The translations under genes and the position numbers were made by a program. A DNA stretch of 64,000 bases from positions 41,540,001-41,604,000 of the forward strand of contig NC_086373.1 in assembly GCF_036588685.1 (NCBI RefSeq), in the 5' to 3' direction. The stretch's first letter is position 1. Each line of letters begins with the position of its first letter. The notes under the pieces were generated by a model. It did not search any database and was not told where the DNA came from. It saw only the letters and a program-made list of their open reading frames with translations. Of the stretch, positions 23,490 through 62,704 are shown one piece after another. Origin of the DNA: Mytilus trossulus. Lineage: Eukaryota.

Positions 23490-25229
23490 CTATCCGAGAT
23501 ATCCTTTAGACGGCTTTCTACGGCAAATCCTATGGCAACCAACAGTGGCACAGAATTTGGTTGTTGGACAATCTCCATCACTAAAACAGTCGTTTTTGCA
23601 ATCAGTTTTTCCTCCTACAACTGACTGAGCAACGACTCCTGAACCTGAAGTACGAATTGAACCACCACGTCTGGAAGAACCAGTGTCTAGTCCACCTCGT
23701 CCAGCGCTGATTGAGTCGAGGATTTCAGAACCTGAATGACCAGACCCTCCACGTCTACTACCTATGGTTTCCAAATGAGAACTGCTAGAGAGATCAAAAT
23801 TTCTATCCAGACCAGATGTACCAATTCTGCTGCCAGATGACATATGATCATCATTGCTTGAAACTCTGGTCAAGCCAGATGATGAACTTCTAGAAGAAAT
23901 ATCGACACAGTAACTGCTACAACCATCATGTACACATTTATGTCCTGAACGACACAACTTGTCATCTCCACACCCATAATGACAATTACTGATACTGTCA
24001 TCGTCAGACAAAACACGAGACAAACCAGTTGAGGAGCCCCTTGATCCAGAGGTCCTGCTTCCAACAGAACCACCAGACAAGCCTAAACTGTCTGATGATC
24101 CGTGTGTTACAAATTCACTGCCTATTCCATGAGATGTTTCAACTCTACTTGATCCTGCTCGTCTATTTGCATCAATAACATCCAGCACAGAAAGGGATTC
24201 ACCATCACGACGCCCGTTTCTGTTTCTTCCAATTGTGTTTTCCAATCCATGTCTATCTAATGCATGTTTTTCCTTTGGTGCATATACTGTAAATTCAAAT
24301 ATATGACATTTTATATAGTTTTCTGGTTCAAGAGAGAGTTTTAGCGAGACTTTAAAACAGGAATAATCGACCATTTTCCAAATGCCTGTACCAAGTCAGG
24401 AATATGACAGTTTTCATCAATACCCTTGATGTGTTTGAGCTTTTGATTTTGCCATTTGATAAGGCACGTACCGTGTTTGATTTTCGTCGGAGTTCAATAT
24501 TTTTGTTATTTTACGTTTTTCACATAATAATATATGCACCTGTCCTAAGTCAGGAATCTGATGTACAGTAGTTGTCGTTTGTTTATGTAATATATACGTG
24601 TTTCTCGTTTAGTTTATATAGACTAGACCGTTGGTTTTTCCCGTTTGAATGGTTTTACACTAGTAATTTTGGGGCCCTTTATAGCTTGTTGTTCGGTGTG
24701 AGCCAAGGCTCTGTGTTGAAGGCCGTACTTTAACCTATAATGGTTTACTTTTTAAATTGTTTCTTGGATGGAGAGTTGTCTCATTGGCACTCACACCCCA
24801 TCTTCCTATATCTATATAGTATTTCAAAAACAATAGATATGAACTTTATATAGATATAAAGGTTGTTTTTTTGCCAAAAAGATAAATATCCACTATTTAT
24901 CAAAGTACCTTTAAACAGTACAAACACTCATCAAAACCCATATCGTACTTTAAGCTATAAAGGAACCATTATAACAAAAGGCAAAACTATTACAAAAGAT
25001 AACTATTTGTTTTAAGGTATTTTATTAAAGTTTTCATGAATTTGTGCTGAAATTGTATCTTTCTAAAGATTTTTCTGCGGTAAGATATAAATATATTTAA
25101 TCTCAATATCAACAAACTTTTGGTAAAGCAGCCTATATATCTCGTGCATGTAAATTGAATATTTTTCTTACCGGCTACTGTCATTGTGGTCAATGCCATC
25201 GAGAAGAGAAAGGTCTGAAATTTCATCAT
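23490..25229 (-). CDS. Cluster gene 1: secreted Ser/Gly/Arg-rich protein with two 6-Cys WAP-like modules (284 aa)
   Basis: Exon 2 coding part 25229-25172 (MMKFQTFLFSMALTTMTVA signal peptide, G|GTAAG); exon 3 24286-23490 (acAG|TATATGCA). Non-coding exon 1 ~26871-26830; TATAAAA at 26901-26895. Confidence 0.9.
24535..24815. mobile_element. Abundant SINE-like dispersed repeat (…GGAGAGTTGTCTCATTGGCACTCACACCACATCTT… family) in gene 1 intron 2
   Basis: The same motif recurs at ~735-830, 17757-17860, 32070-32365, 48536-48582 and 63400-63495. Confidence 0.7.
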
Positions 25230-25404
25230 CTCTAAGAAATCTGAAAAACACATGGTAAATATTATGTCTGAGAGAATCATAATCAGCACATCACTGACAT
25301 AAAACGGTGAATCTAAAAAATAATTGTTTTATTTTTGACATGCGAGACAGTTACATCCTCGGAAGGATTAATGATAATTTTTAGGTAAAACTTAAAAAAA
25401 ACAA

Positions 25405-25988
25405 AGGAGTAGGTCCATTAAGACCTCTTTTTGACCCCAAAATAAGGCAGTTTTACAAGATTCATAAACTGTAATCTTTTAGTTATCTATTGGACAGTAG
25501 ACTGGTTCTGCTACATAAATATGGGCTGTTTTTGACAATACAATGAACATGTATTGGGTACTAGCACCATTAAGTCATGCTAAATTACTGAAATCTTCAC
25601 AATTCTAGCATTTTAGTTAAAATTTAGATAGTTTTCGTGTAAAACGAAAGTGGTCGCATTCATGTTCATCCTTAATATTGAAAAGTAAGTTGTATTTTAT
25701 GATAATACATATAAACATATATAAAGGTTGAGTATGAACACGGATGCGGCCACTTTCAATTTTGACAAAAAACATCTGAAAAGTGACATTTTTGGGGCAT
25801 ATTTGGTAGATTTTTCATATTTGAGCTTGAATCGGATCGTTTTTAATGACTTACTCAGTTAAAATCTTTCACTTAAACTAATTGATTCAAATGAAATAGA
25901 CACTCAAGTGTTTCAAAAGTGTTTGAAATCTTTCGTCAGATGAACCTGAAATTTGAGGTCAAAATCGGTCCTTACCGAACATACTCCT
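25405..25988. mobile_element. Kolobok-like non-autonomous DNA transposon in gene 1 intron 1
   Basis: Imperfect TIRs AGGAGTAGGTCCATTAAGACC / GGTCCTTACCGAACATACTCCT. Confidence 0.6.
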
Positions 25989-27610
25989 TTCAACAAAATC
26001 TTGATTTTTTTTAGGTTTGATTGTTTTTGAGCTACAGGTTGTCAAAATTTATTATTCTGTAAGAATTCTTTCTCCAAAAGGCATTTTTATGAAATTAATA
26101 CTAAAAATTTGACTTTAAGTATCTAAATTCTTTCAACGGATATTACGCAAGACTAAAACCCAACCAAGCTAAATATTGATATTGCATATTAATAAATCGA
26201 GAACTTATAGTTCCAATTTATATTAAAATTATTACGTTTCAGAACAATTGGATAGAACTTACAAATTAAAAATTGATTCACGAATCGAAAAATAAAGAAA
26301 AGAGCTTAAAGAAAAATAGCAACACCTTTCACTGAATTCTTAGAGATGCACATCTTTTTTCTTTGTGAATGAATATTTTAAATCTTTTAGCAAAATGTAA
26401 AGAGTAACTTCAACGTCTCAAATAATTATTTAAGTTGGCTTTTAATTTCCGACAGATATTAAAACAAAGTAAAAATCTTCTTGTGTGCCAATTAAATGTA
26501 TACTTCGAATCAGTTGTTTTCTAGAATAAACATACAAATGTGTCTTTTACCTTTCAGTCATCTAAATCGATACATAAATGTTGAACACTGCACAATTTTC
26601 GATACACTTGTCTTTCTGAAATCATTACATATTTAAATTTCTTTCTAACAAGTGAGCAATATCATTTTTTTACATACAGCAAATGCATCAAGTTTAGACA
26701 AACCGTACCTTATGAACTTTAACAATTCTTTTTATAATTCTTTTTATTTTATCTAGCTCACTTTTGCATTCTTGTTGTTTACATTCGTTTATAATATATA
26801 TATATATCTATGCTAAAACATGGTCTTACCTTTGTTTAAAGCAATTGAAATATTAAGTGGAACTGAATAGTGTTTTGCTGCTTCCGAAATGTTCTTTTAT
26901 ACCATTTTCAATTAGTTTTTCCTTTAAATGACGTACACACAAGGAAACATGTAACTAAACCGCAAATGATGAATTTGTTAAATGTATTCGAACTCTTTTA
27001 ATGTCACAAATGTCATATTTCTATAAAATTGTGGATTATGCTTAATTTTTTAGGTGTACTAAGGGCGAAATTACACTTACTTTGTCTTTCAACAGCAAAC
27101 ATATTTGTCATTATGTCATTATACATGTAGTTATTACGAAATATCGCTTTGACTTATTATCAATTTGGTAAAATATGCACGTTATTATTTTCGTTCTAAT
27201 CAGAGACATGTACTGTTTTAATTAAACCTAACCAGAAGCCTTTATTTCATTATTATATGGACGTTATTACGTTTCAGTTAGAATTGTTTGAAAACCACTG
27301 TGTTTAGAAACACAGCTTTTATTTAGACATATAACATAACATCTGATTCGAACAGGTTTGGACGTACGTTAAAAAGCAGGACGAGCACGATTTTTAGCTA
27401 AAAACCAAACGAATGAACATTTAGAAAAATAGTGTTTCAGATAGAGACGAACTTTCTGCTCCACATATGGCATACGTCATGTTGCTTATGAAAAAACACA
27501 ATGTTGGCTTAGTTTAAATCATTGGGGGAAAAGTAGAGGTACCGACCATCGTATTACTTTTAGAAAAACACACATAATTAGAAAATTAGGACCTTGTAAT
27601 ACACACATAA

Positions 27611-30600
27611 ACTGACTGCTGGGAAAGACCGGCTGACAACCAAGAATAGAATGGTGACGTCTGGAGAGACAGATGGCATTCAGGGAAGACTGAAACAAGG
27701 GTGTGAAGGGTTGGCATCCCAACACACTGTTCCTGTGAAGGAACACCATACCAAGCTACAGAACAGAATAAAGAGCAATACCCCCAGGGTCTTCCGAGAG
27801 GGGGGGAGGATGAAAGACCCATTGAGCAGGACAAAACGGTAACAACTCGGCTAATCCAACGGACTTTGACTGGAACAACGGCAGAAACCAAGTGTCATTG
27901 TGGAAAAGTTTGCAAGAACTTAAAAGGTTTCAAGATACACCAGGCAAGAACTAAGTGTGGATCTGGGAAGCAGCAAAGGGAACGCACAGTTAACACTGAT
28001 GAGACGGCGGAGGACCACAGCAAGGAAGCACACCACAGTGCTGAGGACCTCTTACCTAATGAAGCTACTCAGATCAACATTGAGGAGGAGCAAGGGAATC
28101 GAAACCAGCAGAAACCAGCGAAAACACCATCGACAGACAGCAGGAAAGAAAAGATACAATGGCCAGCAACAGATGATAAGAGATGGGAGATCTTTGACGA
28201 AGACCTAGATAAGATCTTAGATAACACACTAACAGGAGATGTACAGAGAAAGATATCATCATTGTCAACACTTATATATGCAGTAGGACAAGAAAGATTT
28301 GGAGGCAGTAACATCAAAACAAGAGAAAGCACTCTGGGTAACAGCAAACATAACAGACGTCAACAAGAAATACAAACACTCAGAACTGAAATAAGCGATG
28401 TCACTAAACAGTATAAAAGAGCAAATGAGGAGGAGAAAGAAGGATTGAATGAGCTAAGATCAATTCTGAGGGAAAGAAGAAACAATCTACAAAGAGCAGA
28501 AAGAATTAGAAAAGCTAGGAAGGAAAGAGGGAAGAAGAGAGCAATGTTTGTGGCCAACCCATATAAGTTTACCAAAGCAACACTGGACGGAACAAAGGCG
28601 GGATCAGTAAAAAGCTCAAAAGAGGAAGTGGAAAAACATCTACCAGAGACGCACAGTGACGAAAGGCAGTGGGCACATCTAGGTAACTGTGAAAGGATAG
28701 AGAATGTGCCAGAACCAGAGATACCAATGAACATTAAGGAACCATCATGGAAAGAAGTATCAGATGTTGTAAAGAAAGCCAGGTCTGCATCATCACCAGG
28801 ACCAAATGGCATCCCGTACAAAAGATATAAGCAGTGTCCAAAGATTTTGAAACACCTGTGGAGGCTACTGAAAGTGGTGTGGAGGAAAGGGAAGATACCA
28901 TCATGTTGGCAGAAAGCAGAGGGGTGTTTTATTCCAAAAGAGGAAAAATCAGAAGACATCACACAATTTAGAACTATTTCCCTCCTGAATGTAGAAGGAA
29001 AGATCTTTTTCTCTATTATGGCTAGAAGGATGACATCATATATGACAGATAACAACTATGTAGACACTTCAGTACAGAAGGGCGGAATACCAGGATTCTC
29101 AGGATGCATTGAACATACAAGCATCATTTCACAACTGATTCAAGAGGCCAAAGTAAACAAGAAAGATCTTACAGTAGTATGGCTAGATTTGGCAAACGCA
29201 TATGGCACTATTCCTCACATGCTGATACAGGAGTCACTAGACCATTATCATATTCCCGACCACTTTAAGAAAGTAATAAGAAGCTATCTCAGTGGGATTG
29301 AGCTGCGATTTACAACGAGCACATTCACAACAACATGGCAGAAACTACAAAAAGGAATAGTTACTGGATGTACCATCTCAGTTATTTTGTTTGTCATGGG
29401 AATGAATATGATTATTAAATCTGGAGAGAGAGAAACTAGAGGCCAAAAAACATCAACTGACATTAGGCAACCACCAAATAGAGGGTTTATGGACGATTTA
29501 ACCATCACCACAGATACTCATGTCCAGGCTAGATGGGTGTTGAAGGCTTTGGAAGAGACAGTTACATGGGCAAGGATGGCTTTTAAACCAAGGAAGTCTA
29601 GAGCTTTAATAATAAGGAAAGGGAAGAGCACACACCAAGTCGAACTGAAGGTGCAAGGGGAAGTCATTCCATCAATAATAGACAATCCTATCAAGTGCTT
29701 AGGAAAGTGGTATGATGACTCTCTTAGTGACAAGAACAATATCAGGAAAATCGAACAACAGGTTTCAGAGGGAATGAGGAACATCGATAAGACAGGTCTA
29801 CCAGGGAAATTAAAGGCATGGATATACCAACATGGACTCCTGCCAAGGATATCATGGCCACTTATGTTGTACGAAATTACATTATCAACAGTTGAGAAGC
29901 TTGAAAGAACCATCAACAGACATCTAAGGAAATGGTTAGGTGTCCCTCCAAGTTTTACAACTGTAGGACTGTACAGCAGGACCGCAAAGTTGCAGCTCCC
30001 ATTAACATCTATAGTGGAAGAATTCAAAGTATGCAAAACTCGCCTTGTAATGACATTGAAAGAATCAAAAGACGACAAAGTAAGAACAGCAGGTGTCCAA
30101 GTAAGAACAGGACGAAAGTGGTCAGCATCAAAAGCAGTTTCAGAGGCAGAGAGTAGATTAAGGCACAAAGATATCATAGGAACGGTGGCAGTAGGAAGAC
30201 AGGGCCTTGGAACATCAAAATGTTGCTACTGGAAAAACGCTAACACTAAAGAAAGACGAAGTTTAGTTCAAAGAGAGGTAAAATCTAGAGAAGAAGAGAA
30301 CAGACAAGCAAAGACAGTAGAATTAGGGTGCCAAGGCGCATGGTCAAGATGGGATTTAGAACAACGATCCCTCACATGGTCAGAAATATGGCGATATCCT
30401 CAGTACCAATTACAGTTTCTTCTGAGATCAGTGTATGATGTGTTACCAACACCATCTAATCTGCACAGGTGGAAACTATCAGAAACACCAGATTGTCCCT
30501 TGTGCGGAAATAGAGGAACACTTCATCATGTACTTTCAGGATGCAATATCGCTCTCACACAGGGGAGATATACATGGCGACACAACCAAGTACTCAGGGA

Positions 30601-31290
30601 ACTTGCTGAAGTGATAGAGAAACAGAGGAGAGATGCAAAACAAACTAAGAACAAACCTATGAAAATCCAGTTTGTGAAGGAGGGGGAAATAGGCCAGAAA
30701 AGTAAACAGAACACATCAGGAATGTTACATCAGGCTAAAGACTGGCAGCTAGAAGTAGATCTAGGGAAAAAGCTGCAATTTCCGGACATTGTACAAACCA
30801 ACCTAAGACCAGACATGGTTCTATGGTCTTCCGGCAGTAAAAAGGTTATGATAATTGAGCTGACTGTTCCCTGGGAGGAGAGATGTGGCGAAGCCAATGA
30901 AAGAAAGAGGGCAAAGTATGACGAACTATTGGCAGAATGTAGAGATAAAGGATGGCAGACATGGAACTTTCCTGTTGAGGTTGGCTGCATAGGCTTCCCT
31001 GCACAGTCAGTGTGGCGGTTGCTTTCTGCAGTAGGAGTGACTGGCCGGCAAAGAAGAACAGCAATACAGAAACTAGGCCAAGCAGCAGAGAAAGCGTCTT
31101 GCTGGATATGGATGAAAAGAGACAGTAGTAGCTGGAAACCCACCACCAATGCGCAGTGATTGATCACCACTGTGGACCCCCCGTCCTGAGAGTGTACCGA
31201 GCTAGGGGTCGAAACACACGATGACGGATGGCCTCGGCTGAGGACATTGGCGGTGTTTGCAGTAATTCCATCAGTACTGTATGTAAGTAA
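27611..31290 (+). mobile_element. Full-length RLE-type non-LTR retrotransposon (R2 group; HERO-like clade)
   Basis: Single long ORF plus a GC-richer structured 5' leader and a pseudoknot-forming 3' UTR. Boundaries are approximate and no clear TSD was found. Confidence 0.85.
27866..31159 (+). CDS. Reverse transcriptase / restriction-like endonuclease polyprotein
   Basis: N-terminal zinc finger CHCGKVCKNLKGFKIHQARTKC; RT motifs SPGPNGI, FRTISLL, WLDLANAYG, GIVTGCTIS, FMDD; CCHC knuckle CPLCGNRGTLHHVLSGC; RLE motifs RHN...RPD...IELTVPWE...KRAKY. No internal stops; the frame is open from 27707. Confidence 0.95.
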   Translation: MTGTTAETKCHCGKVCKNLKGFKIHQARTKCGSGKQQRERTVNTDETAEDHSKEAHHSAEDLLPNEATQINIEEEQGNRNQQKPAKTPSTDSRKEKIQWPATDDKRWEIFDEDLDKILDNTLTGDVQRKISSLSTLIYAVGQERFGGSNIKTRESTLGNSKHNRRQQEIQTLRTEISDVTKQYKRANEEEKEGLNELRSILRERRNNLQRAERIRKARKERGKKRAMFVANPYKFTKATLDGTKAGSVKSSKEEVEKHLPETHSDERQWAHLGNCERIENVPEPEIPMNIKEPSWKEVSDVVKKARSASSPGPNGIPYKRYKQCPKILKHLWRLLKVVWRKGKIPSCWQKAEGCFIPKEEKSEDITQFRTISLLNVEGKIFFSIMARRMTSYMTDNNYVDTSVQKGGIPGFSGCIEHTSIISQLIQEAKVNKKDLTVVWLDLANAYGTIPHMLIQESLDHYHIPDHFKKVIRSYLSGIELRFTTSTFTTTWQKLQKGIVTGCTISVILFVMGMNMIIKSGERETRGQKTSTDIRQPPNRGFMDDLTITTDTHVQARWVLKALEETVTWARMAFKPRKSRALIIRKGKSTHQVELKVQGEVIPSIIDNPIKCLGKWYDDSLSDKNNIRKIEQQVSEGMRNIDKTGLPGKLKAWIYQHGLLPRISWPLMLYEITLSTVEKLERTINRHLRKWLGVPPSFTTVGLYSRTAKLQLPLTSIVEEFKVCKTRLVMTLKESKDDKVRTAGVQVRTGRKWSASKAVSEAESRLRHKDIIGTVAVGRQGLGTSKCCYWKNANTKERRSLVQREVKSREEENRQAKTVELGCQGAWSRWDLEQRSLTWSEIWRYPQYQLQFLLRSVYDVLPTPSNLHRWKLSETPDCPLCGNRGTLHHVLSGCNIALTQGRYTWRHNQVLRELAEVIEKQRRDAKQTKNKPMKIQFVKEGEIGQKSKQNTSGMLHQAKDWQLEVDLGKKLQFPDIVQTNLRPDMVLWSSGSKKVMIIELTVPWEERCGEANERKRAKYDELLAECRDKGWQTWNFPVEVGCIGFPAQSVWRLLSAVGVTGRQRRTAIQKLGQAAEKASCWIWMKRDSSSWKPTTNAQ

Positions 31291-38310: not shown

Positions 38311-39678
38311 TCATGGTGTGTATCCTTTGGAACGTCTTCTTCTACAAATCATGTGACAATTAACAGATGCACAGTATTTGCTAGTTGGACAATCTGAATC
38401 GAGATGGCAGTCTGTTTTGCAACCAGTCTTTCCTCCTAACACTGACTGAAACGCGACTCCTAAACCAGCAGCACTAACTGATCCGCTTCTTCTTAAAGAA
38501 ACTGTGTCCAACACATCTAGCCCATTTCGTCTAGAGGTAATTGCGCCAAGAATATCGGAACCTGTATGACTAGACCCTCCACGGCTACTACCAATAGTTT
38601 CCAAATGACCATTCCTAGATAGATCTAAATTTCTGGCCAAACCAGATGAACCAATTCGACTGCCGGAGGATAAATGACCATCATTACTTGAAACCCTGGT
38701 CAAGACAGATGATGACCCTGTGTTTCCCCTTCTGAAAGAGTCTGATAATCTAGATGAACCAATGATGCTTCCAGAAGAAATTTCGACGCAGTAGCTGCTA
38801 CAGCCATCATGTACACATTTATGTCCCATACGACATAACTTGTCATCTCCACACCCATAATGACAGTCACTGTCGTCGTCAGATAAAGACCGAGACAAAC
38901 CAGCTATAGAGCCTCTAGATGCAAATGTCCTGCTTCCAACAGAATCCCTGGGCAGTCCTCTACCGGCTGATGACCCGTGTGTTAGAAATTCATTTCCTAT
39001 TCCATGCGATGTTCCAGCTCTTGATCCTGCTCGTCTATTTGCATCAATGACATCCAGGACAGAAAGAGATCCACCACCACGACCACCGTTTATGTTTCTC
39101 CCAACTGTGTTTTCAACCAGCAAAACCTTTTCTACTCCATGTCTGTCTAATGCATGTTTGTCTGTGGGTGCGTAGACTATAAAATAAATATTTGACCTGT
39201 TATATTTCACAAATCTTGAAATACAGAACAATAAAAATTAACTCTTGTTTATATGTAAGTATAAGGTTTCTGGGATTTTTACCAATGATATCAACTAAGG
39301 ATTAAATGACTAGAATGTTATCAACTTAAGGGAAAGTACGGCTTCGGCACAGATGTATGCTTCTTTCGTGTAATAAGCTATAAAAGACTTCATATGAAAA
39401 ATGTGAACCAATTCAAAAAGAAAAAAAACTTTTGAGAAATGTTCTTTCATAATAGTCAAAAATATGTAGATGTAAGTAAATATCTTCTTAAGTATTGAAA
39501 TTATATCTTTTTAAAGATTTTTTTATTGTAAGTCATTTAGATTTTTGTATCTTCACACAAAACCACTTCTGTCAAAATAGTCTGGAAACTCGCAGGAAGC
39601 GATTCGAATATTTTACATACCGGCTAGTGTTACTGTTGTCAATGCAATCAAAAAGAAAATAGCCTGGAATCGCATCAT
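38311..39678 (-). CDS. Cluster gene 2 (subtype B): secreted Ser/Gly/Arg-rich protein with two 6-Cys WAP-like modules (307 aa)
   Basis: Exon 2 coding part 39678-39621 (MMRFQAIFFLIALTTVTLA); exon 3 39176-38311. Exon 1 ~40127-40089; TATAAAA at 40157-40151. Confidence 0.9.
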
Positions 39679-41002
39679 TTTCTGAGGTTCTGAAAAACAT
39701 CAGGATTAATATTATATGTTACTGGAATTATCATTTTTTTGTCTTTTAATTTTAATTTTTCCAAATATTTAAATAAAGAAAGAAACGTTGAGCAAAGTTA
39801 GCACACTATCTACCATTCTTAGTTAATTTATCTAACGATGTTTCTTTATTACATTTTCATCATTTGCTTTTTATCATTTTATCACTGAAATTCCATTTTG
39901 AAGCAAACAGAAAATGTAGTTAGAATTGAACCATGTGTACCTTATAGTATGTTTAACTCTATTTATGCCTTTTTCTATTTCTTCAATAAATTTTTTCTTG
40001 TTTATCTTTGTCAAAATAGCATACATGTTGTTTTGTATCTTTACCATTCTTATTTATAATAAATATATATGTATAAAATATTTCTTACCTTTGTTTATAA
40101 CAATTGAAATGATTTGTAATGAATATTGTTGTATTGCTTCAGAATCGTTCTTTTATACCGTTTCAAATATGTTTTTAATAGTTGACATACACACAAGGAA
40201 ATTTGTAAATAAACCGCAAATGATGAATTTGTTAATTATGGTTCAAACTTTAAATGTCACCTGCATTCTTCTATGCAGCTTTGGATTATGCTTATTTATA
40301 AAAACAACTGTACACAGGGTCATTTCGTTATTTTCCTACTACTAAACACATTTGTCATTATGTCATGAAGTTATTACGAAATATTATTCAATATGGTTGA
40401 ATTTATTAATTTCGTTGTAATCAGAGACTTGTACTGTTTAAAAACTAACAGAACTCCTTGTATTACCTCATGGTATGGATATTTTTAATCTTTAAATTGA
40501 AATTACTTGAAAACTTTATCATTTGCTTGACATTTTCTGCGAATGGTTTTTTGAAACGCACGCGCAGTAAATTAATCATTAGAACGTATCTGATTTAACG
40601 AAGCTTGAGCTCATACTTACAAAAGGGACAAGATCTAGCCTAATTTAAAATCAAAATATTCAACATTTTAGAAGTTCTAGTGACATGTATCTTGTAACTC
40701 TTTTCTTTATGCTCCGTCATTGAAAATTATGATTGTTAACTGTTTTGGGTTTTAAATTACAAAAGGACAACAGAAGTATACGACTGTTCGAAAGTAATTA
40801 ATCGATAGAGTGAGAACAAATCCGGGTTACAAATCAACTCCTCCATTTGTTTAATGTTGCAATATATTTTGGCTGTGAGATATTTTTTGGTGACATGATA
40901 GAATGGTCACTATTTTTTATGTTTTCATCCAAAGAGAGATAAAAAGCTAAAGAACATCGCCGCAAAAATTACAAAAACAAACACACAAAAAGGACAACCT
41001 TT

Positions 41003-48606: not shown

Positions 48607-49790
48607 TCATGATGAGTATCCATTTGATAATCTTCTTCTACAAATTCTGTGACAATTAACAGTGGCACAGTATCTGATTGTTGGACAATCTCCATCACTA
48701 AAACAGTCGTTTTTGCAATCAGTTTTTCCTCCTACCACTGACTGAGAAACGAATCCTGAACCTGAAGTACGTGCTGATCCACTACGTCTGGAAGAAACAG
48801 TGTCTAGTACAACACTCCCACCTCGTCTTGAACTGATTGCGTCAAGAATATCTGCACCTGAATGACCAGACACTCCATGGCCACTACCAAGAGTTTCCAA
48901 ATGAGAATTTCTGGACAGATCAACATTTCTAGCCAGACCAGATGAACCAATTCGGCTACCAGAGGTGAAATGATCATCATCGCCAGATAAAGCACGGGGC
49001 AAACCAATTGAAGAACCTCTTATGATTCCAGATACAGAGGTTCTGCCTCTAACAGTAGCCCCAGATAATCCCCTACCGGAAGATGACCCGTGTGTTATAA
49101 ATTCACTGCCTATTCCATGAGATGTTGCAACTCCTCCTGATCCTGCTCGTCTATTTGCATCAATAACATCCAGTACTGAAAGAAATCCTTCACCACGACG
49201 CCTGTTTATGTTTCTACCAACTGTGTTTTCCACCAATAACACCTTCTCCACTCCATGTATATCCAATGCATGTTTGTCTGTGGGTGCATATACTGTAAAA
49301 TGAATATTTGACGTGTTATAATTTTAACAAATCTAGTAATACAAAAAAAAACAACTTTTGTTGATACGTGGATATTAGGATAACTGATAGTTTTACTAAT
49401 TTGATTACCATACCCTTTAGATGAAATGACTAGAATGTTATCAAGTGCAGGGAACGTACGGTTTCAGGACAGATGTAGGCTCATACTGTATAGTAAGCTA
49501 TAAAAGACTCCACATGACAAATATGAATCAATTAAAAAAAAAAACAGAAAACGTTTTGTGAAATTTTCTTTTATGTATACAAATGTATGCAGATGTTAGA
49601 AATAAACCCTCTTATGTACAAAAAATATATCCTTTTGAAAATTGTATTATGATAAGGTATTGGGAATTTTGTATCTTAACACCCAAATTATTTTATAAAA
49701 ACATTCTTTAAACTCACATTAAATTTACTTACCGGCTACTGTTATTGTGGTCAATGCCATTAAAATGAAAATGGTTTGGAATCTCATCAT
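48607..49790 (-). CDS. Cluster gene 4 (subtype B 5' region): secreted Ser/Gly/Arg-rich protein, one WAP-like module (247 aa)
   Basis: Exon 2 coding part 49790-49733 (MMRFQTIFILMALTTITVA); exon 3 49292-48607. Exon 1 ~50351-50313; TATAAAA at 50381-50375. Confidence 0.9.
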
Positions 49791-51520
49791 CTTTATAGTT
49801 TCTGAAAATTAACAGAATTTATGTTTTACGTTACTGGAATTTAGATGTGCACGTTTCTTATGATTTTTAATTACCTAGAGAAAGAATGTTTCGTTGAGTA
49901 AAGCAGGCAATCATTTTGAAAAATCATACTTAATTAAAATGTTTTAGAATGCCCTTTTCTTTTTCTTTTTTTTCTTTTTAAAATTCCTTTATTTAACTTC
50001 TTTGAATAATACGTTCGTTTTGTAAATTCTCTAATGAATAGACAAAAAACATCAAGTCTTTTTATTTTCTGATCAGAATGCTCTTTTCTTACAACTTCTT
50101 CATTTGCCTTCTATATCTTAAACTGCAATTTTTAACAGGTAGAAAATTTGGTAAGAATTCATATATTTGAACCATTTAGTATGTATTTTTTTTATGCCTT
50201 TTCTAATTCCTCAATGAATTATTTCTTGTTTATCTGTGTTATATGTAATGTTCATAGTTATTGCTATGTAAATCTAGCATTTTTATTTATAATACATATG
50301 TATATTTCTCACCTTAGTATAAAACAATAGGAATAGTTTGTAATGAATATTGTTGTATTGCTTCAGAATTGTTCTTTTATACCGTATCCAATTTTTTTCT
50401 AATAGTTGACATACACACAAGGAAATTTGGATATCAACCACAAATGATGAATTTGTTAATTATGTTTCAAACTTTTAAATGTCACAATGTCATTTTACTT
50501 TGCAGTCTTGGATTATGCTTATGTATAAAAAATAACTGTACTCAGGGTTATTTTGTTTTCTTACTGCTACACACACATTTGGCGTGATGTCATAATACAC
50601 GTAGTCATTACGAAATATTATTTTGACTGATGAACAATATGGTTAAATATGCAAATTATTATTTTTGTTGTAATCAGAGACTTGCACAAACTATCCGAAA
50701 GCCTCCTATATCCTCATGGTTTAGACGTTCAAATGTTTTAAATGAAATTACTTGAAAACCACTGTTTGATATTTTGTTCGAATGAGGTTTTTTTAAACAC
50801 AGTAATTATTAAGACATAACTTACATAACAATGCTTGAGCTTATGCTTACAACAAGGACGAGAACCATCCTTATTTGTAAACAAATTATTAAACAATTTT
50901 GAAAAAAAATAGTTTTGATGTATCTTGCATATCTCCTCCTCATGTTCCGTCATTGTTATGCTTGTTCATTAGGAATGTTATCACCAATCTAAAACTTCAA
51001 AAGAATTCACATCACTGTGTTAGGTTCTAAGTTACAAAACATTAATACATTAATAATGTTGTTTATATATAATCTACATATAAATCAACTCTAAAATTTG
51101 TTTGATTTCGCAGTATCTTTTGGCTGTTGAAAACTTTTGGTTACATGATAGAATGGTTTACTTTTTCATTTTATAGAGAGAAAAATACTAAAGGAAACAG
51201 TATTCAAAACAAAACCTATTAAACTACATAAATTGTAGCACCAACCACTTCATACCCCGGGGCGATCTCAGGTGAAAACTACTTTAACTAATCTGAGTAG
51301 ATTTTACTCAATAATGACACAGCAACTGCCTGCACTGACTATTTGTACTATTGCATGTATTGAAAGATGATTGACTTTTTTTAATATAGAAACTACAAAC
51401 ACATATTGAATATAACGGAAACGAAACGGAAAATACTCAAAATATAAAAACTCCTATGTAAACTCCGATTTAAAATAAACAAATATCTATTTCATTTATC
51501 ACGTACATGTATCTTTATAA

Positions 51521-51965: not shown

Positions 51966-54202
51966 TATAATATATATCAACAATATTGCAATTGCTTTAG
52001 ACCTGGTGTCATTTTCTTGGTTAGCACTACAAATAACTGTTTTGAACACCTTATACGTATTTAGTATGCAAACTGTTTGTTTTACACTGATTAGAAAAGA
52101 ACGCCAGGCTAACAATTATGGAATACACAACACTGATGCATAAAAGATTTATGGTGCTTTCCATTTTTTCAATGTTACTTCAACGGAAATTTTAAATCCA
52201 TATGCATAAAGGTAGATAACACGATGTAAAAATGTAAGCGTGTGATTTGAATTCTTGGAAGTGTTATTGTAAACCAAAGTACATATATAGGTTTAACATC
52301 TTGCTCACAGAAGATTATTTTTCATTTAGGCTTTTTTTATTTTATATAATTTTGGCTTTTTCAAAATAATTGCGATCTATCTCCCTTTTTTATATGTGTT
52401 TGTCAATCGAATGGAAGCCATTTTTCCTCTGACAGGGCTTTTTCGATATTCATATGGGGCAGACTTTAAACAATAGCTTCTCAAAAAATTGTAAAGATAC
52501 AAGAACTACGATTAACTTTAGATTTGAAAATGTAAATTTGTGTTTTGTTGTCTTTAATTTTTACTTATTTGCTTTGTCTAATTCACGTGTTGTGCTTATA
52601 TACTACATGTTTTCTTGTTTTTATATTGATTAACATTATAACACAACTTTTTTCTGACATTTTTACCTATGATATCTCATTGTTTTTTTCACACATCGTT
52701 ATCAATATAATGGAATTTGAAGCAACTGTCATACAAGTCAAAGGTTTAACCAGCTATTCAACAAGGTTTAATCCATCAGTTTCTGCAAAAGAAAAAGTGT
52801 GTACCAAGTCAGGAAAATATCAGTTGATATCCCTTTGTTTAATGCGTATGAGAATTTGATTTTTTAAGGTGATTAGGGACTTTAAGAGACGTTTTGTCCG
52901 CCTGAAATAATAAATTTAACACAAAATGTTAATACGGAACGAAAGAACAAGATATTTTTACATATCAAAACTTAAGTTAAAATAAAATTTTACATTTCAG
53001 GACAAAATGTCGAGAGGCAACAAAAAAGGATATTTTCTTTTTTTTAACCCAAGATAAAACTGACGGTGCCCAGATTAGACTCAACTTTGTTTCAATTTTT
53101 AGTTTTCCTTCAAAATTTGTTCCTTATATGTTATAGACTCCAGTTTATTTAATACTAGTAAACCGTTTGCAAACAAACCGCTAGTATTGTGTATATGTTT
53201 AATATCCTAAAAAAGAAGAGTCTCCCAACGTCAACCAGTTCACCTTTAAGAGTGGTTTTTCAAGCAATTTAAAGAAATACTAATATCGTTTAAAAGGAAA
53301 TAAAAGACTTCAGATTATTATTTTTTTGGTATTGTTCAAGTCTCTGGCTATTACCAAAACATCCATCAATTTATTTGCAAACATTAATAATAGGTCAATG
53401 CAATATGTCATAACACGTACATGTATTATGACGTAACGAAAACTATGTCGATTGTATGAGGAAACAAAATGTGTTTTTGACCCTGAGAATATTTCTGTGA
53501 ACATATATTGCAATTCCTTAGTACTACGACAGTGTGACATTTAAAAATAAACAACGAATTCATCATTTGCGGTTAACTTTAAACTTTCCTTGTGTACATG
53601 TATATTATAGACAATATAATTGAAAACGAACGATATAAAAGAGCGATTTGGAGGCAGTAAACATTATTCATTAGAAATAGTTCAAATTGATCCAAACAAA
53701 GGTAAGAAATTATTAAAGCAGAATCATAACTATTTGGTATTAATAAATAGGAAAGAAATAACTAAAATTAATGCCATAGTAACAAAGGTAGGAAATAAGT
53801 GATAAAATATTTAGAAAATTGTATTTATAAAGTTTTAAGCGTGATGCATAGTTCAATAGTTTGGTTTTGATCTCAATAATTTGAATTTAGATTCAGTAAC
53901 ACAAAACTGCTTCAAACTTTAATTTATTTTCATAACTTATATTTACTGTGACTATCAGACGTTTTATTCGGAATGAAATAATTATTGGAGATATTCAAGT
54001 TATAATCTTTTTTCTGCATTTGTAAATTGTGCGTAAACATCCTATGTACCTTCTAATTTGTAATGTGAACCTTATTTCTCTGTTAAATCATATTGCATTT
54101 CTAAATTGAAACTTTATTTCCACAATAAACATATCTCGTATTAAATTATTTGAACTGCTATTTTGTAAGTTACGATATTTTTCCTCTAAATTTCAGACTT
54201 GA

Positions 54203-55453
54203 ATGATGACATTCCAGACCATTTTCGTTTTGATGGCATTGGCCACAATAACAGCAGCCGGTAAGAAAAATATTCAATGTGTTTTAGTCGAAATTTATAA
54301 ACTGTATCAAATAAAAGTCTTTTCATTATAAAATTTAAAAAAAAACCACAGAATGTTAAGATATTTCCAAAACCGAACAGTCTCTGCAATGGCTTACAAC
54401 AACGTTATTTTGCTAAAACTGTGTGGTTGTTTAATTTGCGATAATAATTGATATTTTTGTATTGTTAAATAAAAAAAAATCACCAGTATTTTTTTCCCCA
54501 ATTACTGTGGATTCATTTATTTTCGTGGGAACCAATTTTCGTGGTTTGAGGTGAACTTACATATTCGTGGATATTTTTTTTCGTTGTTTTGGTAAAGTCA
54601 ACACTAATTACTTAGAAAATTTGTTATTCGTTGAACATTTGAATTCGTGGTTCTCCTGTACCCACGAAATCTACGAAAACTGGTATCCAACGAATATTAA
54701 TGAATCCACAGTAATCAACTCATGAAAATCACATAAATTGTCAGATATTCAATATTTACAGTATATGCACCCTCGGATAAGCATGCATTAGATAGACATG
54801 GAGTGGAGAAAGTTTTACTGGTCGAAAACACAGTTGGTACAAACATAAACAGGCGTCGTGGTGACGGATCTCTTTCTGTACTGGATATTATTGATGCAAA
54901 TAGACGAGCAGGATCAAGAAATGTTGGAACATCTCATGGAATAGGCAGTGAGTTTATTACACACGGGTCATCTTCCGGTAGAGGATTTTCTGGAGCTTCA
55001 GTTGGTGGCAGGACCTCTGTATCTGGAAGCATAAGAGGCTCTTCAATTGGTTTGTCCCGTGCTTTATCTGACGATGATGATCATTTCACGTCTGGTAGCC
55101 GAATTGCTTCATCTGGTCTAGCTAGAAATTTGGATCTGTCAAGAAACTCTCATTTGGAAACTATTGGTATTGGTAGTGGCCATGGAGTGTCTGGTCATTC
55201 AGGTGCAGATATTCTTGACGCAATCAGTTCTGGACGAAGTGGGCGTGTTGTACTGGACACTGTGTCTTCAAGACGTAGTTTATCAGCACGTACTTCAGGT
55301 TCAGGATTCGGTTCTCAGTCAGTGATAGGAGGAAAAACTGATTGCAAAAACGACTGTTTTAGTGATGGAGATTGTCCAACAAATAGATACTGTGCCACTG
55401 TTAATTGTCACAGAATTTGCAGAAGAAGACTGTCTAATGGATACTCATCATGA
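54203..55453 (+). CDS. Cluster gene 5 (subtype A): secreted Ser/Gly/Arg-rich protein, one WAP-like module (249 aa)
   Basis: Exon 2 coding part 54203-54260; exon 3 54762-55453. Exon 1 ~53664-53701; TATAAAA at 53634-53640. Confidence 0.9.
54505..54711. mobile_element. TA-target MITE in gene 5 intron 2
   Basis: TIR CTGTGGATTCATT / AATGAATCCACAG. The empty site CCAATTAATCAAC in gene 6 intron 2 (~58077-58091) shows TA duplication. Degenerate relative at ~2747-2940. Confidence 0.9.
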
Positions 55454-55972: not shown

Positions 55973-56030
55973 AAAACACTTTTTTCGCCAGAGCAAAGAC
56001 AATCCCTTGTCAAGTTCTACATTGATTGGA

Positions 56031-56631
56031 GCTGCTATTTTGTTGATAACGATATTTTTCCTATAAATTTTAGACTTAGAAATGATGAGATTTCCGACCA
56101 TTTTCGTTTTGATGGCATTGATCACAATTACAGAAGCCGGTAAGAAAAATGTTCAATGTCTTTAGCCATTTTCGTTATGATGACATTGACCACAATAACA
56201 GCAGCCGGTAAGAAAAGTGTTCAATGTGTTTTTCGCGAAATTTATAAACATTATCAAATAAAAGTGTGTTCTGTGTTTAAATAAAATTTGAATGTCCTAC
56301 TAGATAATGTTCTTTAAAACAGCTGATATTTGCAAAACCGAACAGTCTCTTCCATTCGCTTGATGTGTTTTATCATTTTATTTTGCCGTTTGAATAGTGA
56401 CTTTCGGTTTTGAATTTTCTTCAGAGTTCAGTACTTTTCTTTACAATTGCTTACAACAACTTCCCTTTACATAGAATGTGTAGTTGTTTTATTGGCGATA
56501 ATACTTGAAATCATTGTATTGTTCAATAACAATAAAATACAATTTCTTTTTTCTCTAAATGAATCATTAATTAATTCATGAATATAACATAAATTGTCAG
56601 ATCTTTAATTTTACAGTATATGCATTAGATA
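56031..56631 (+). pseudogene. Truncated eighth cluster paralog (signal-peptide exon, partial duplicate, intron 2 and a stub of exon 3)
   Basis: Exon 2 copy 56074-56139 (MMRFPTIFVLMALITITEA|GTAAG), partial repeat 56166-56207, intron 2 homolog, acceptor at 56615-56616, then only TATATGCATTAGATA. No promoter or exon 1. Confidence 0.8.
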
Positions 56632-57351: not shown

Positions 57352-58395
57352 TCATGATGAGTATCCATTTGAAAGTCTTCTTCTGCAAATTCTGTGACAA
57401 TTAACAGTGGCACAGTATCTGTTTGTTGGACAATCTCCATCACTAAAACAGTCGTTTTTACAATCAGTTTTTCCTCCTATTACTGACTGAGAAACGAATC
57501 CTGAACCTGAGGTATGTGCTGATCCACTACGTCTTGCAGAAACAGTGTCTAGTACAATACGCCCTCCTCGTCTAGAACTGATTGCGTCAAGATTATCTGC
57601 ACCTGGATGACCAGACACTCCATGGCCACTACCAATAGTTTTCAAATGAGATTTTCTTGACAGATCCAAATTTCTAGACAGACCAGATGAACCAATTCGG
57701 CTACCAGACGTGAAATGATCATCATCGTCAGATAAAGCACGGGACAAACCAATCGAGGAGCCTCTAATGCTTCCAGATACAGAGGTCCTTCCACCAACTG
57801 AAGCTCCAGACAATCCTCTACCGGAAGATGACCCGTGTGTAATAAACTCACTACCTATTCCATGAGATGTTCCAACATTTCTTGATTCCGCACGTCTATT
57901 TGCATCAATAACATCCAGTACTGAAAGAGATCCGTCACCACGACGCCTGTTTATGTTTCTACCAACTGTGTTTTCGACCAGTAAAAGTTTCTCCATTCCA
58001 TGTCTGTCAAGTGCATGCTTTTCCGAGGGTGCATATACTGAAAAATTGAATATCTGACAATTTATGTGATTTTCATGCGTTGATTAATTGGAAAAAAAAA
58101 TACTGGTGATTTTTTTTTTATTTAACAATACAATAATATCAATTATTATCGCCAATAAAACAACTACACACTTTTAGCAAAAGAACGTTGTTGTAAGGCA
58201 TTGCAGAGACTGTTCGATTTCGGAAATATCTTAACATTCTTTGTTATTTTTTTTTAAATGTTATCTACACAAGGAAAACACCTCTATTTGATACAGTTTA
58301 CATATTTCGACTAAAACACATTGAACATTTTTCTTACCGGCTGCTGTTATTGTGGCCAATGCAATCAAAACGAAAATGGTCTGGAATGTCATCAT
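57352..58395 (-). CDS. Cluster gene 6 (subtype A): secreted Ser/Gly/Arg-rich protein, one WAP-like module (247 aa)
   Basis: Exon 2 coding part 58395-58338; exon 3 58037-57352. Exon 1 ~59048-59011; TATAAAA at 59078-59072. Confidence 0.9.
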
Positions 58396-61300
58396 TCAAG
58401 TCTGAAATTTAGAGGAAAAATATCGTTACTTACAAAATAGCAGTTCAAATAATTTAATAACGAATTATGTAAATTGTGGAAATAAAGTTTCAATTTAGAA
58501 AATTAATACAATATGATTCAACAGAGAAATAAGTTCACATTACAAATTAGAAAGATACATAGGATTTATATTCACATTTTACAAATGCAGAAAAAGGAAC
58601 TTGCATAACTTGCATTGATTGTCAAGTATAAGTATAAGATAAACATATATCTTAACAGTATTCAAACATAAGAACCAAATATTACTTCGAACGATTAATA
58701 ACTTGAATATCTCCAATATTTATTTCATTCCGAATTAAACGTCTGATAGATTTTAAAACACAGTAAATATTAGTTATGAGAATAAATTATACTTTGAAGT
58801 AGTATTGTGTAACTGAATCTAAATTCAAATTGCTGAGATCAAAACCAAAATATTGAACTATGCATCACGCTTTAAACTGTATAAATACAATTTTCTAAAT
58901 CTTTTATAACTTATTTCATATCTTTTTTACTGTAGCATTAATTTTAATTGTTATGTCTTTTCTATTTATTTATACCAAACAGTTATGATTCTGCTTTTAT
59001 AATTTCTTACCTTTGTTTGGATCAATTTGAATTATTTCGAATGAATAATGTTTACTGCCTCAAACTCGCTCTTTTATACCGTTCGTTTTCAATTGTATTG
59101 TTTATAATACACATGAACACAAGGAAAGTTTAAAGTTAACCGAAAATGATGAATTCATTGTTTTTATGTGCATTTTTAAATGTCACACTGTCGTAGTACT
59201 AAGGAATTGCAATATATGTTCACAGAAATATTCTCAGGGTCAAAAACACATTTTGTTTCCTTGTACAATCGACATAGTTTTCGTTACGTCATAATACATG
59301 TACGTGTTATGAAATAGTGCTCTGACCTATTATTAATGTTTGCAAATAAATTGATGGTATGTTTAGTAATAACCAGAGACTTGAACAATACGAAACAAAT
59401 AAAAATAAACTGAAGTGTTTTATTTCCTTTTTAACAATACTAGTTTTTCTTTGAAATGCTTGGAAAACTACTCTTAAAGGTTAACTGGTTATCGTTGGAA
59501 AACTCTTCTATTTTTTTTCAGAATTTTAAACATATACACAATACTAGCGGTTTGTTTGCTAACGGTTTACTAGTATTAAATAAACTGGAGTCTATAACAT
59601 ATAAGTAACAAATTTTGAAGGAAAACTAAGAATTAAAACAAAGTTGTGTCAAATCTTGGCACCGTCAGTTTTATCTTGGGTTAAAAAAAAGAATATGTCT
59701 TTTTTTGTTGCCTCTTGACATTTTGTCCTGAAATGTAAAATTTCAGACAATTATCTTTTATTTTAACTTAAGTTTTGAGATATAAAAATGCCTTGTTCTT
59801 TTGTTCCGTATTAACATTTTGTGTTATATTTATTTTTTCAGGCGGACAAAACGTCTCTTAGGTCCCTAATCCCATTGAGAATCAAACGCTCATCACATCA
59901 AACAAAGGGATATCCACTAGTATATTCCTGACTTGATACAAGCATTTTCTTTTGCAGAAACTGATGGATTAAACCTTGTTGCATAGCTGGCTAAACCTTT
60001 CACTTGTATGACAGTTGCATTTAATTCCATTTTATTGACAACAATGTGTGAAAAAACCAATGAGATTTCATAGGTAAAAATATCAGAAAAAAGTTGTGTT
60101 CTAATGTTAATCAATATATAAACAAGAAAGGATGTAGTATGTAAACACACAATGTGATATAGACAAAGGACATGAGCAAAAATGAAAAACAAGAAAACAC
60201 AAATTTACATTTATTATCAAATCTAAAGTTAAAGGTAGTTCTTGTATCTTTACAATTTTCTTGAGAAGCTATTGTTTAAAGTCTGCCTCATATGAATAAA
60301 GGAAAAGCCCAGTCAGAGGAAAAATGGCTTCCATTCGATTGGCAAACACAAATAAAAAAGGGAGATAGATCGCAAGTATTTTGAAAAAGCCAAAATTATA
60401 TAAAATAGAAAAAAGCCTAAATGAAAAATAATCTTTTTTGAGCAAAATGTTAAACCTATATATGAACTTTGGTTTACAATAAACACTTCCGAGAATTCAA
60501 ATCACACGCTTACATCGTTTTATCTACCTTTATGCATATGTATTTAAAATTTCTATTGCGTTATTATACATATTTAATTATAGATACCTCTTAATAATTA
60601 GTGTGTTTAAAAAAGAAACATTCGAACAAATATCAAGCTTTGGTTTTCAAGTAATTTTATTTAAAAAAATTTTAACGTCTAAACCAAGAGAAAATAAAAG
60701 TCTTTCGGATTGTTTTGTTAAAAATATACAAAATTCTAATTAATAACTTGCAATTCTAACCATATTGTTGATCAGTCAAAATAATATTTCGTAGTAACTA
60801 CGTGTATTATGACATAATGTCAAATGTGTGTGTAGTAGGAAGAAAAGGAAATAACCCTGAGTACAGTTTTTTTTTTTTATAAATAAGCATAATCCAAGAC
60901 TGCAAAGTAAAATGACATGGTGACATTTAAAAGTTTGAACCATAATTTACAAATTCATCATTTGTGGTTGATATACAAATTTCCTTGTGTGTATGTCAAC
61001 TATTAGAAAAAAGTTGAATACGGTATAAAAGAACGATTCTGAAGCAATATAACAATATTCATTACAAACTATTCCTATTGTTTTATACTAAGGTAAGAAA
61101 TATACATATTTATTAAAAATAAAAATGCTAGATACACATAGCAATAACTATGAAAATACTAGATAGTAGATACACATAGCAATTACTATGAAAATTTAAC
61201 TCATATAACACAGATAAACAAGAACTAATTCATTGAGGAATTAAAATAAATTTATACATACTGTATGGTACAAATATTTTAATTGTAAGTAAATTCTCTG

Positions 61301-61521
61301 TATGTAAAAAAAATCATTTAAACTAAAAGAAAGCAAAGGAGGAAGTTGTAAGAAAAAAGCATTGTAAAACAATTTAATTAAGTATGGTTTTTTAGAGTGA
61401 TTGCCTGATTTACTCAACGATTCATTCTTTCTTTAAGCAATTGAAAATCAAGAGACACATGCACATCTAAATTCCAGTAACGTAAAACATTAATTCTGGT
61501 TTTTTTTCAGAAATTATAAAG

Positions 61522-62704
61522 ATGATGAGATTCCAAACCATTTTCATTTTAATGGCTTTGACCACAATAACAGTAGCTGGTAAGTAAATTTACTGTGGGT
61601 TTATAGTATGTTTTTATAAAAACAATTTGGGTGTTGAGATACAAAATTCCCAATACCTTACCATAATACAATTTTCAAAAAGATATAATTTCTGTACATA
61701 AGAGGGTTAATTACTAACATCTACGTATGTTTGTATACATAAAAGAAAAATTCACAAATTTCTGTTTTTTTTTTAAATTGATTCATATTTGTCATGTGGA
61801 GTCTTTAAAAGCTTACTATACAGTATGAGCCTACATCTGTCCTGAAATCGTACGTTCCCTGCAGTTGATTACATTCTAGTCATTTCATTTTAAGTTTAAG
61901 GTAATCAAATTGGTAAAAAAAACACATTTTCTAATATCTACGTATCAACAAATTTTTTTTTTGTTGTATATTAACTAGATTTGTGAAAATTATAACACGT
62001 CAAATATTCATTTTACAGTATATGCACCAACAGACAAACATGCATTAGACAGACATGGAGTAGCAAAAGTTTTTCTGGATGAACACACAGTTGGAAGAAA
62101 CATAAACAGGCGTCGTGGTGATGGATCTCTTTCTGTACTGGATGTTATTGATGCAAATAGACGAGCAGGATCAAGAGGAGTTGCAACATCTCATGGAATA
62201 GGCAGTGAGTTTATTACACATGGGTCATCTTCCGGTAGAGGATTATCTGGAGTTTCAGTTGGTGGCAGGACCGCTGTATCTGGAAGCATTAGAGGCTCTT
62301 CAATTGGTTTGTCCCGTGCTTTATCTGACGCTAATGATCAGTTCACGTCTGGTAGCCGAATTGGTTCATCTGGTCTGGCTAGAAATTTGGATCTGTCAAG
62401 AAATTCTCATTTGGAAACTATTGGTAGTGGCCATGGAGTGTCTGGTCATTCGGGTGCAGATATTCCTGACGCAATCAGTTCTGGACGAGGTGGGCGTGTT
62501 GTACTAGACACTGTTTCTGCCAGACGGAGTGGATCAGCACGTACTTCAGGTTCAGGAGTCGTTTCTCAGTCAGTGCTAGGAGGAAACACTGTTTGCAAAA
62601 ACGACTGTTTTAGTGATGGAGATTGTCCAACAAACAGATACTGTGCCACTGTAAATTGTCACAGAATTTGCAGAAGAAGACTGTCAAATGGATACTCATC
62701 ATGA
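61522..62704 (+). CDS. Cluster gene 7 (subtype B 5' region): secreted Ser/Gly/Arg-rich protein, one WAP-like module (247 aa)
   Basis: Exon 2 coding part 61522-61579 (MMRFQTIFILMALTTITVA); exon 3 62019-62704, open and in frame with ORF 62309..62704. Exon 1 ~61054-61092; TATAAAA at 61024-61030. Confidence 0.9.

Follow-up and report, generated by a model that had tools for sequence, protein, structure and literature searches.

We propose that the seven paralogous genes found in a 64,000-nucleotide stretch of the Mytilus trossulus genome (hereafter the window; C1:41,540,001-41,604,000, where C1 denotes contig NC_086373.1) encode secreted proteins whose long, predicted disordered Ser/Gly/Arg-rich chain ends in a six-cysteine module derived from the WAP domain, and that these proteins may be made in bulk for an extracellular material. 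The descent of the module from WAP domains is well supported by sequence comparison, and the material function is put forward as the first-ranked but tentative reading of the family. The genes, which we label g1 to g7, occupy positions 23,490-62,704 of the window on both strands, and alignment together with a six-frame listing of open reading frames (ORFs) gives for each of them a large exon of 214-306 codons with an open frame; a pattern search places a matching signal-peptide exon upstream of every one. The first-pass annotation of this DNA had described seven intact paralogs in which a signal-peptide exon and a phase-1 intron precede the large exon, and this is confirmed by the open frames, by the exon junctions and by exact matches of four of the genes to RefSeq models. 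Each protein is laid out as a 19-residue signal peptide, a cationic Ser/Gly/Arg-rich chain of about 190 residues, the module, and a tail of the form RR[RK]-x-S-x-GY. The earlier description of an S/G/R-rich chain with His, followed by a C-terminal six-Cys module and this tail, thus applies to all seven, and the predicted signal peptide agrees with the proposal of a secreted family. The assignment of a single six-Cys domain to each protein is correct for the one-module short forms (g3 to g7) and has to be amended for the two-module long forms, g1 and g2, which hold a second, internal module.

The module, C-x3-C-x5-C-x5-C-x4-C-x3-C, spans about 26 residues in all seven window proteins, and its six cysteines are invariant in an alignment of 24 modules. 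Its likely origin can be read from the gene at the far end of the locus, P0069 (LOC134724726, 526 aa; C1:41,846,876-41,848,507, minus strand), in which a canonical eight-Cys WAP is followed by five six-Cys modules. The cysteines of the module are in register with C2, C3, C4, C5, C7, and C8 of that WAP; C1 is gone together with the segment that precedes it, the C6 position is occupied by A, V, T, or I, and the spacing C2-x3-C3-x5-C4-x5-C5-x4-C7-x3-C8 typical of the waprins is kept. In WAP domains the disulfides pair C1 with C6, C2 with C7, C3 with C5, and C4 with C8, and hence the loss of both C1 and C6 would have removed exactly one disulfide. The Pfam WAP family (PF00095) is the best family, at E ≤ 1, for 22 of the 24 modules, five of which 24 match the DPY family (PF21164) at the same level, and a profile of the module matches the solved structures of omwaprin (E 3.7e-5), elafin (0.014), and nawaprin (0.015). 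The in-register WAP of P0069, the profile match to omwaprin, and the best-family counts argue together for WAP descent, and we therefore accept that the module is homologous to bona fide WAP domains, in agreement with the earlier designation "WAP-derived," and regard it as a WAP domain minus the C1-C6 disulfide. The seven window proteins themselves score 15.4-20.0 bits against PF00095, over profile positions 10-39 of 41, and so fall below its gathering cut-off of 20.8 bits, which at this locus is passed only by the N-terminal domain of P0069 (30.2 bits, positions 1-41) and, with a small margin, by a copy that has three modules (22.6 bits). With six cysteines each, the window modules also lie outside the definition of the WAP core as an eight-Cys, four-disulfide unit.

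Structure predictions are consistent with this origin. AlphaFold models the module with a beta-hairpin, at a predicted local distance difference test score (pLDDT) of 71 for the module alone and of 87-92 within a full-length model, and the top Foldseek matches of the modelled module are omwaprin (probability 1.00, TM-score 0.60), elafin, and SLPI, all at E ≥0.07, which is not significant for so tiny a domain. The elafin and SLPI superpositions have a root-mean-square deviation of 1.7-2.0 Å over 29-30 residues, again with weak E values, and VIA-align superposes the module on omwaprin at 2.2 Å over 35 residues with a Z of just 2.1. The ESM Atlas neighbours of the module alone are all WAP clusters (0.80), which we take as a lead only, and an ESM Atlas search with the full-length protein gave no usable match. 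The waprins (omwaprin, 3NGG; nawaprin, 1UDK) are the best match by both profile and fold; they are cationic, as is the module, and their spacing C2-x3-C3-x5-C4-x5-C5(C6)-x3-C7-x3-C8 is the same, including the unusually short C2-C3 loop. They differ in that they are stand-alone snake venom proteins of about 50 residues with eight cysteines, whereas the mussel module is without C1 and C6 and ends a disordered chain of about 190 residues, and the two are unrelated in taxon and gene family. A likeness was also seen to the DPY domain of Dumpy, an extracellular-matrix fibre protein of Drosophila (1OIG), the motif of which is matched at E 5.6e-4 by the C3-x5-C4(P)-x5-C5-x4-C7 part of the module, and the relatives that carry many modules on linkers resemble the modular design of Dumpy. 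However, DPY has four cysteines where the module has six, the best whole-protein score (16.8 bits) does not reach the DPY cut-off of 27 bits, and in P0069 the modules stand in register with a canonical WAP of the same protein, which argues for descent from WAP rather than from DPY. Kinship with conotoxins or late nodulins was rejected, as each was a single sub-threshold Pfam match on cysteine spacing. The module, which is still folded with confidence in silico, would be a natural three-disulfide WAP variant that helps to show which disulfides the scaffold needs, and might serve as a minimal cystine-knot-like scaffold.

These features bear directly on the suggestion that the proteins are canonical WAP-type serine-protease inhibitors that guard a secreted matrix from proteolysis; a protease-inhibitor precursor had been among the readings offered for the family. 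WAP ancestry would be in keeping with such a role, as would the abundance of WAP and other inhibitors in the foot, mantle, and shell of mytilids (PMC5549309, PMC7971044, PMC6641155). That said, C1 and its segment are missing, only three residues separate C2 from C3, and the alignment to elafin starts only past the loop; moreover, the C1-C6 disulfide that has gone is one of the two (C1-C6 and C2-C7) that brace the loop region. The binding loop of elafin and SLPI begins ahead of C2 and extends into the C2-C3 interval, the scissile bond lying just past C2, as seen in the 1FLE and 2Z7F complexes. The segment that makes up this loop, C1 to just past C2, is thus absent or cut to three residues, which weakens this reading, and we consider it very unlikely.

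The family is far larger than its representation in the window. A six-frame search of the whole 1.30-Gb genome gave 46 exon matches, all of which fall within C1:41.563-41.848 Mb, a locus of about 285 kb with about 30 copies of which the window covers the left end and the first seven genes. The claim of a seven-gene tandem family was hence right in pointing to strong amplification at one locus and about fourfold too low in its count. Across the locus we counted 25 open large exons plus fragments, including 16 intact one-module short forms of 224-229 codons that are 88-99.9% identical in nucleotide sequence. The two-module forms are g1, g2, and one more, and the three-module forms sit further to the right, so that the cluster contains a graded series from a canonical WAP with five modules to forms with three, two, and finally one, and the layout of P0069 is likely to be the ancestral architecture of the family. 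Gene orientation alternates along the locus, the copies being both tandem and inverted, and the copies most closely related to those of the window lie beyond its limits, as with g5, which shares 97.5% identity with a copy at 41,614,033. A related gene, P0133 (659 aa; C1:41,413,429-41,415,372, plus strand), lies 125 kb to the left of the window, is annotated as "keratin-associated protein 10-4-like," and contains one canonical WAP and 11-12 reduced six-Cys modules, so that at least one further type of gene in the neighbourhood also uses the reduced-WAP module. A weaker match lies at C1:41,425,162-41,425,641.

The copies do not appear to be free to drift. Among the 16 short forms, for which the mean dS is 0.16, the ratio of nonsynonymous to synonymous substitution (dN/dS) is 0.37 overall, 0.12 in the module and tail, and 0.43 in the rest, which is the disordered part, and it falls lowest in windows that cover the mature N-terminus (0.17-0.24) and the module end (0.08). 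These values indicate that the copies are maintained as functional genes under purifying selection, and the same 16 short forms give no sign of pervasive diversifying selection. The chain that separates the two conserved ends is predicted to be disordered, since residues 21-208 of the full-length AlphaFold model have a pLDDT <50 and no secondary structure. It is made up of Ser (16-20%), Gly (14-16%), Arg (9-12%), and Asp (about 7%) with 8-12 His residues, and the pI (isoelectric point) is 8.6-10.1 overall and 9.3-10.1 in the short forms. The short forms have exactly three tyrosines, namely at mature residue 2, within the module, and in the G-Y near the C-terminus, and every intact cluster gene has both terminal Tyr motifs (x-Y-A/S/T-P at the N-terminus and G-Y at the C-terminus). 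Conservation extends to dibasic sites (RRR, RR) and to motifs of the form [IV]LD-x-[IV]-x(2-4)-RR, and the module with its tail has a net charge of +3 to +4.

Two further explanations concern this chain. One is that it is heavily O-glycosylated on its many serines and forms a mucin-like gel or coating, that is, a hydrated lubricating or protective layer such as pedal, gill, or mantle mucus or an egg coat, in which the Cys knot would provide stability or multimerisation. The 16-20% Ser of the predicted disordered chain and the high gene dosage fit this view, as do the automatic NCBI names of longer relatives ("mucin-21-like," "hornerin-like"). Yet Thr and Pro are low and tandem repeats of the Pro/Thr/Ser (PTS) type are absent, the arginine-rich chain is conserved by position and not by composition alone, and as the cysteines are even in number and all lie in the knot, none is free for multimerisation; we regard this explanation as unlikely. 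The other is a polyprotein precursor from which small signalling peptides are freed at RR/RRR sites, as could be imagined from the four to six conserved dibasic sites and the repeated [IV]LD-x-[IV]-x(2-4)-RR motifs. We found no Gly-basic amidation motifs, however, the predicted fragments are uneven (7 to about 106 residues), and both the 16-fold amplification and the Cys-knot end are atypical of neuropeptide genes, all of which makes this the least credible of the explanations, with hardly any weight in our assessment.

We instead favor, tentatively, an extracellular material protein that is secreted in bulk. An exocrine epithelium, at the mantle edge or in the foot glands, would make the proteins in bulk, and they would join an extracellular material, for example the matrix of the shell or periostracum, the byssus, or a coating. 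There the disordered chain would serve as a spacer that is both hydrated and extensible, and handles for anchoring or cross-linking would be provided by the conserved terminal Tyr, the basic tail, and the disulfide knot. What leads us to this reading is the high dosage of near-identical, conserved copies, the purifying rather than diversifying selection that acts on them, and the long disordered spacer with conserved ends, including the terminal Tyr in every intact cluster gene, together with the relatives that string up to 11-12 modules on Ser-rich linkers (P0133/P0112). Parallels among molluscan shell proteins (lustrin A, perlwapin, and shematrins) add to it, as does the expression of comparable genes, since WAP-like genes of other mytilids are enriched in the foot and mantle rim and those of M. 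edulis are up-regulated during shell repair (PMC5549309, PMC7971044, PMC8194122).

Lustrin A and perlwapin, from gastropod nacre, are secreted molluscan matrix proteins that bear WAP domains, as does the family described here; however, their WAPs are canonical eight-Cys domains, lustrin A, which also has Cys-rich and Pro-rich repeats, is a far larger protein, and neither was among the homologues retrieved in any search. The shell of Mytilus also contains a perlwapin-like protein. In lustrin A, as reportedly described by Shen et al. in 1997, a long Gly/Ser-rich domain is joined to a basic one and, at the C-terminus, to a WAP-like one, the same order as in the mussel family. Lustrin A and perlwapin are both WAP-bearing shell proteins (PMC5854119; PMC6003135). 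The shematrins, which form the framework of the prismatic layer in Pinctada, are likewise encoded by multiple genes and consist of a secreted, low-complexity Gly-rich chain with a C-terminal signature in which a basic stretch is followed by Tyr (RKKKY and similar; PMC3896809), but they are Gly/Tyr-rich and without a Cys domain, whereas the mussel proteins are Ser/Gly/Arg-rich with a disulfide knot and have about 1% Tyr.

Several observations weigh against the interpretation as a material protein. None of the deposited relatives returned by the database searches has a name that refers to shell, byssus, or foot, and a Tyr content of about 1% is unlike that of adhesives based on 3,4-dihydroxyphenylalanine (DOPA) or of the shematrins. 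Many mineral-binding matrix proteins are acidic, whereas those of this family are basic. Because the domain is so tiny, the matches in fold have little statistical weight (Foldseek E 0.07, VIA Z 2.1). In addition, the conserved dibasic RRR/RR sites that bracket the module would be just as suitable in a protein from which a small cationic peptide, WAP-like in kind, is cut by proteolysis.

That last point leads to the explanation that we rank second, which is possible but doubtful, namely that the proteins are antimicrobial precursors of the waprin or crustin kind. The Ser/Gly/Arg-rich chain would be a pro-region or a cationic effector in its own right, and convertase cleavage at the conserved RR/RRR sites would free a cationic mini-WAP with three disulfides and about 50 residues, which would damage the membranes of bacteria; if so, the family would be a new family of mussel antimicrobials. 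Omwaprin, an antibacterial protein of snake venom, is the closest solved structure by profile and by fold and has the same cysteine spacing, the +3 to +4 charge of the module and tail is appropriate, and conserved dibasic sites are located both about 45 residues ahead of the module and right after its last Cys. Tandemly amplified effector families are also typical of immunity in Mytilus. A further argument is the layout of the type II crustins, with which the proteins had been compared from the outset, since these too have a signal peptide, a Gly-rich low-complexity region, and a cationic C-terminal WAP-type domain (PMC10608444). The comparison is valid for the shared architecture and goes no further, as crustins have 12 cysteines (a four-Cys region and a full eight-Cys WAP; PMC10608444) against six per module in the Ser/Gly/Arg-rich mussel proteins, their Gly-rich region is much shorter, they are products of crustacean haemocytes whereas this family is molluscan, and no sequence kinship with crustins was detected beyond the WAP core. 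Against the antimicrobial explanation, the module is near-invariant in the 16 paralogs (dN/dS 0.12), unlike the diversifying pattern usual in mussel antimicrobial peptides, and a pro-region of about 190 residues would be very long, with selection constraining it as well (0.43, and 0.17-0.24 in its N-terminal windows). The relatives with 3-12 modules resemble matrix proteins and not peptide precursors, and none of the relatives found in the databases is annotated as an antimicrobial peptide.

The family is, as had been proposed, specific to its lineage and does not correspond to a named family. Individual exons served as queries, as did, where a full-length chain was needed, the database entries that equal g6 and g7. 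With the large exon of g4 as query, 68 proteins were retrieved, and all that carry a species name are from Mytilus (trossulus, edulis, galloprovincialis, coruscus, and californianus) and are labelled either "uncharacterized protein" or, by automatic naming, "WAP domain-containing protein." HMMER gave just 20 matches at E≤1e-3 among 1.84 billion cluster representatives. The matches that do not carry a Mytilus label are a few unlabelled Logan/ENA sequences of the same plan (P0111, P0114, and P0106, whose contigs resemble transcripts from distant relatives), in which a WAP or a Ser/Gly-rich chain is combined with reduced modules and a basic tail with G-Y, and a homologue search that started from P0111 retrieved itself alone. 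We found no paper on the family in the literature, and its genes are still "uncharacterized" in every annotated Mytilus genome. The one-module form of 244-249 aa was retrieved from the M. edulis species complex only; the matches in M. coruscus have 2-3 modules, and those in M. californianus mostly have 2-3 modules together with two one-module proteins of 265 and 277 aa.

Going beyond the general interpretation as an extracellular material, and with correspondingly little confidence, one might view the proteins as telechelic elastomers, an undescribed class of mussel material in which the two ends of a hydrated, disordered Ser/Gly/Arg chain could be cross-linked. One end would be the N-terminal Tyr/His motif and the other the C-terminal three-disulfide mini-WAP with its basic-Tyr tail. 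The one-module form would have arisen by deletion of internal modules and would then have been amplified to at least 16 copies within the Mytilus edulis complex, representing a recent, dosage-driven innovation in the chemistry of the byssus, periostracum, or shell. Should the proteins be located in one of these structures, they would constitute an abundant, non-DOPA, arginine-rich addition to what is known of mussel material chemistry. The locus may in any case record the evolution of a domain in steps, from a WAP with five reduced modules to three, two, and one, followed by an amplification of about 16-fold.

All seven genes share the same exon structure. The signal-peptide exon ends in T-x-A followed by G|GTAAG (GTATG in g2) in all seven, and the large exon starts, after AG, with TA TAT GCA (TC TAC GCA in g2), which places a phase-1 intron within the Val codon of the mature N-terminus, VYAP. 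Cleavage of the signal peptide at T-x-A|V is predicted solely from the -3/-1 rule. About 0.5-1.6 kb upstream of each signal-peptide exon the alignment reveals a conserved block with an invariant GTATAAAAGA, and in all seven genes an AAG|GTAAG donor follows 68-72 nt past GTATAAAAGA and the TATA box of the promoter is kept. The conservation of this block would fit a putative non-coding leader exon of about 40 nt. Four of the genes match RefSeq models exactly, g3 being XP_063424197.1 (P0074, LOC134707948, 246 aa), g5 XP_063438023.1 (P0072, LOC134719008, 249 aa), g6 XP_063424210.1 (P0007, LOC134707954, 247 aa), and g7 XP_063424223.1 (P0011, LOC134707963, 247 aa), and in each of these models the first 19 residues come from the signal-peptide exon and the remainder from the large exon, with the same coding junction. 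Hence the coding models of the first-pass annotation coincide with those of NCBI, and the genes were known but uncharacterised.

Both long forms are on the minus strand. In g1 (23490-26901) the TATA box is at 26901-26894 and the putative leader exon ends at 26830, the signal-peptide exon is at 25240-25172 and the large exon, including the stop, at 24286-23490, and the internal and C-terminal modules lie within 23883-24020 and 23499-23636, respectively. The corresponding features of g2 (38311-40157) are a TATA box at 40157-40150, a leader exon end at 40089, a signal-peptide exon at 39689-39621 with the donor GTATGT, a large exon at 39176-38311, and modules within 38764-38901 and 38320-38457. 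The short forms on the plus strand are g3 (43069-44787; TATA box 43069-43076, leader exon end 43137, signal-peptide exon 43744-43807 with a single ATG at 43753, large exon 44102-44787), g5 (53634-55453; TATA box 53634-53641, leader exon end 53701, signal-peptide exon 54197-54260, large exon 54762-55453), and g7 (61024-62704; TATA box 61024-61031, leader exon end 61092, signal-peptide exon 61511-61579, large exon 62019-62704). The last of these might be taken for a broken gene, given that the ORF listing contains just a 131-aa ORF, yet its frame is open over 228 codons and we rejected that possibility. On the minus strand are g4 (48607-50381; TATA box 50381-50374, leader exon about 50352-50313, signal-peptide exon 49801-49733 with the ATG at 49790, large exon 49292-48607, module and tail 48616-48753) and g6 (57352-59078; TATA box 59078-59071, leader exon end 59011, signal-peptide exon 58401-58338, large exon 58037-57352).

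Remnants of the family are also present. Two relic signal-peptide exons on the plus strand, at 56085-56145 and about 56159-56215, have intact GT donors and no large exon, and sit in the spacer across which g5 and g6 face each other tail to tail. Further copies of the pair, at C1:41,615,823/41,615,891 and 41,631,192/41,631,260, show that it is part of the duplicated unit. Just to the right of the window is a broken short-form copy (C1:41,607,807-41,608,503, minus strand) whose large exon is in two frames, matching query residues 1-54 and 46-227, and whose signal-peptide exon is without the first ATG. Between the promoter of g1 and the 3' end of g2 is inserted a copy of a non-LTR (long terminal repeat) retrotransposon, represented by an intact ORF of 1,097 codons at 27866-31159 on the plus strand with RVT_1 (E 4e-19) and zf-RVT domains, which accounts for the bump in GC and AT-skew at 28-32 kb. 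An unrelated minus-strand gene in the left part of the window is represented by an exon-like ORF at 9047-9430 that encodes double zinc-ribbon domains (Zn_Ribbon_1, E 1.3e-13; DZR, E 1.2e-12); two neighbouring ORFs, at 6221-7018 and 1671-2033, gave no Pfam match.

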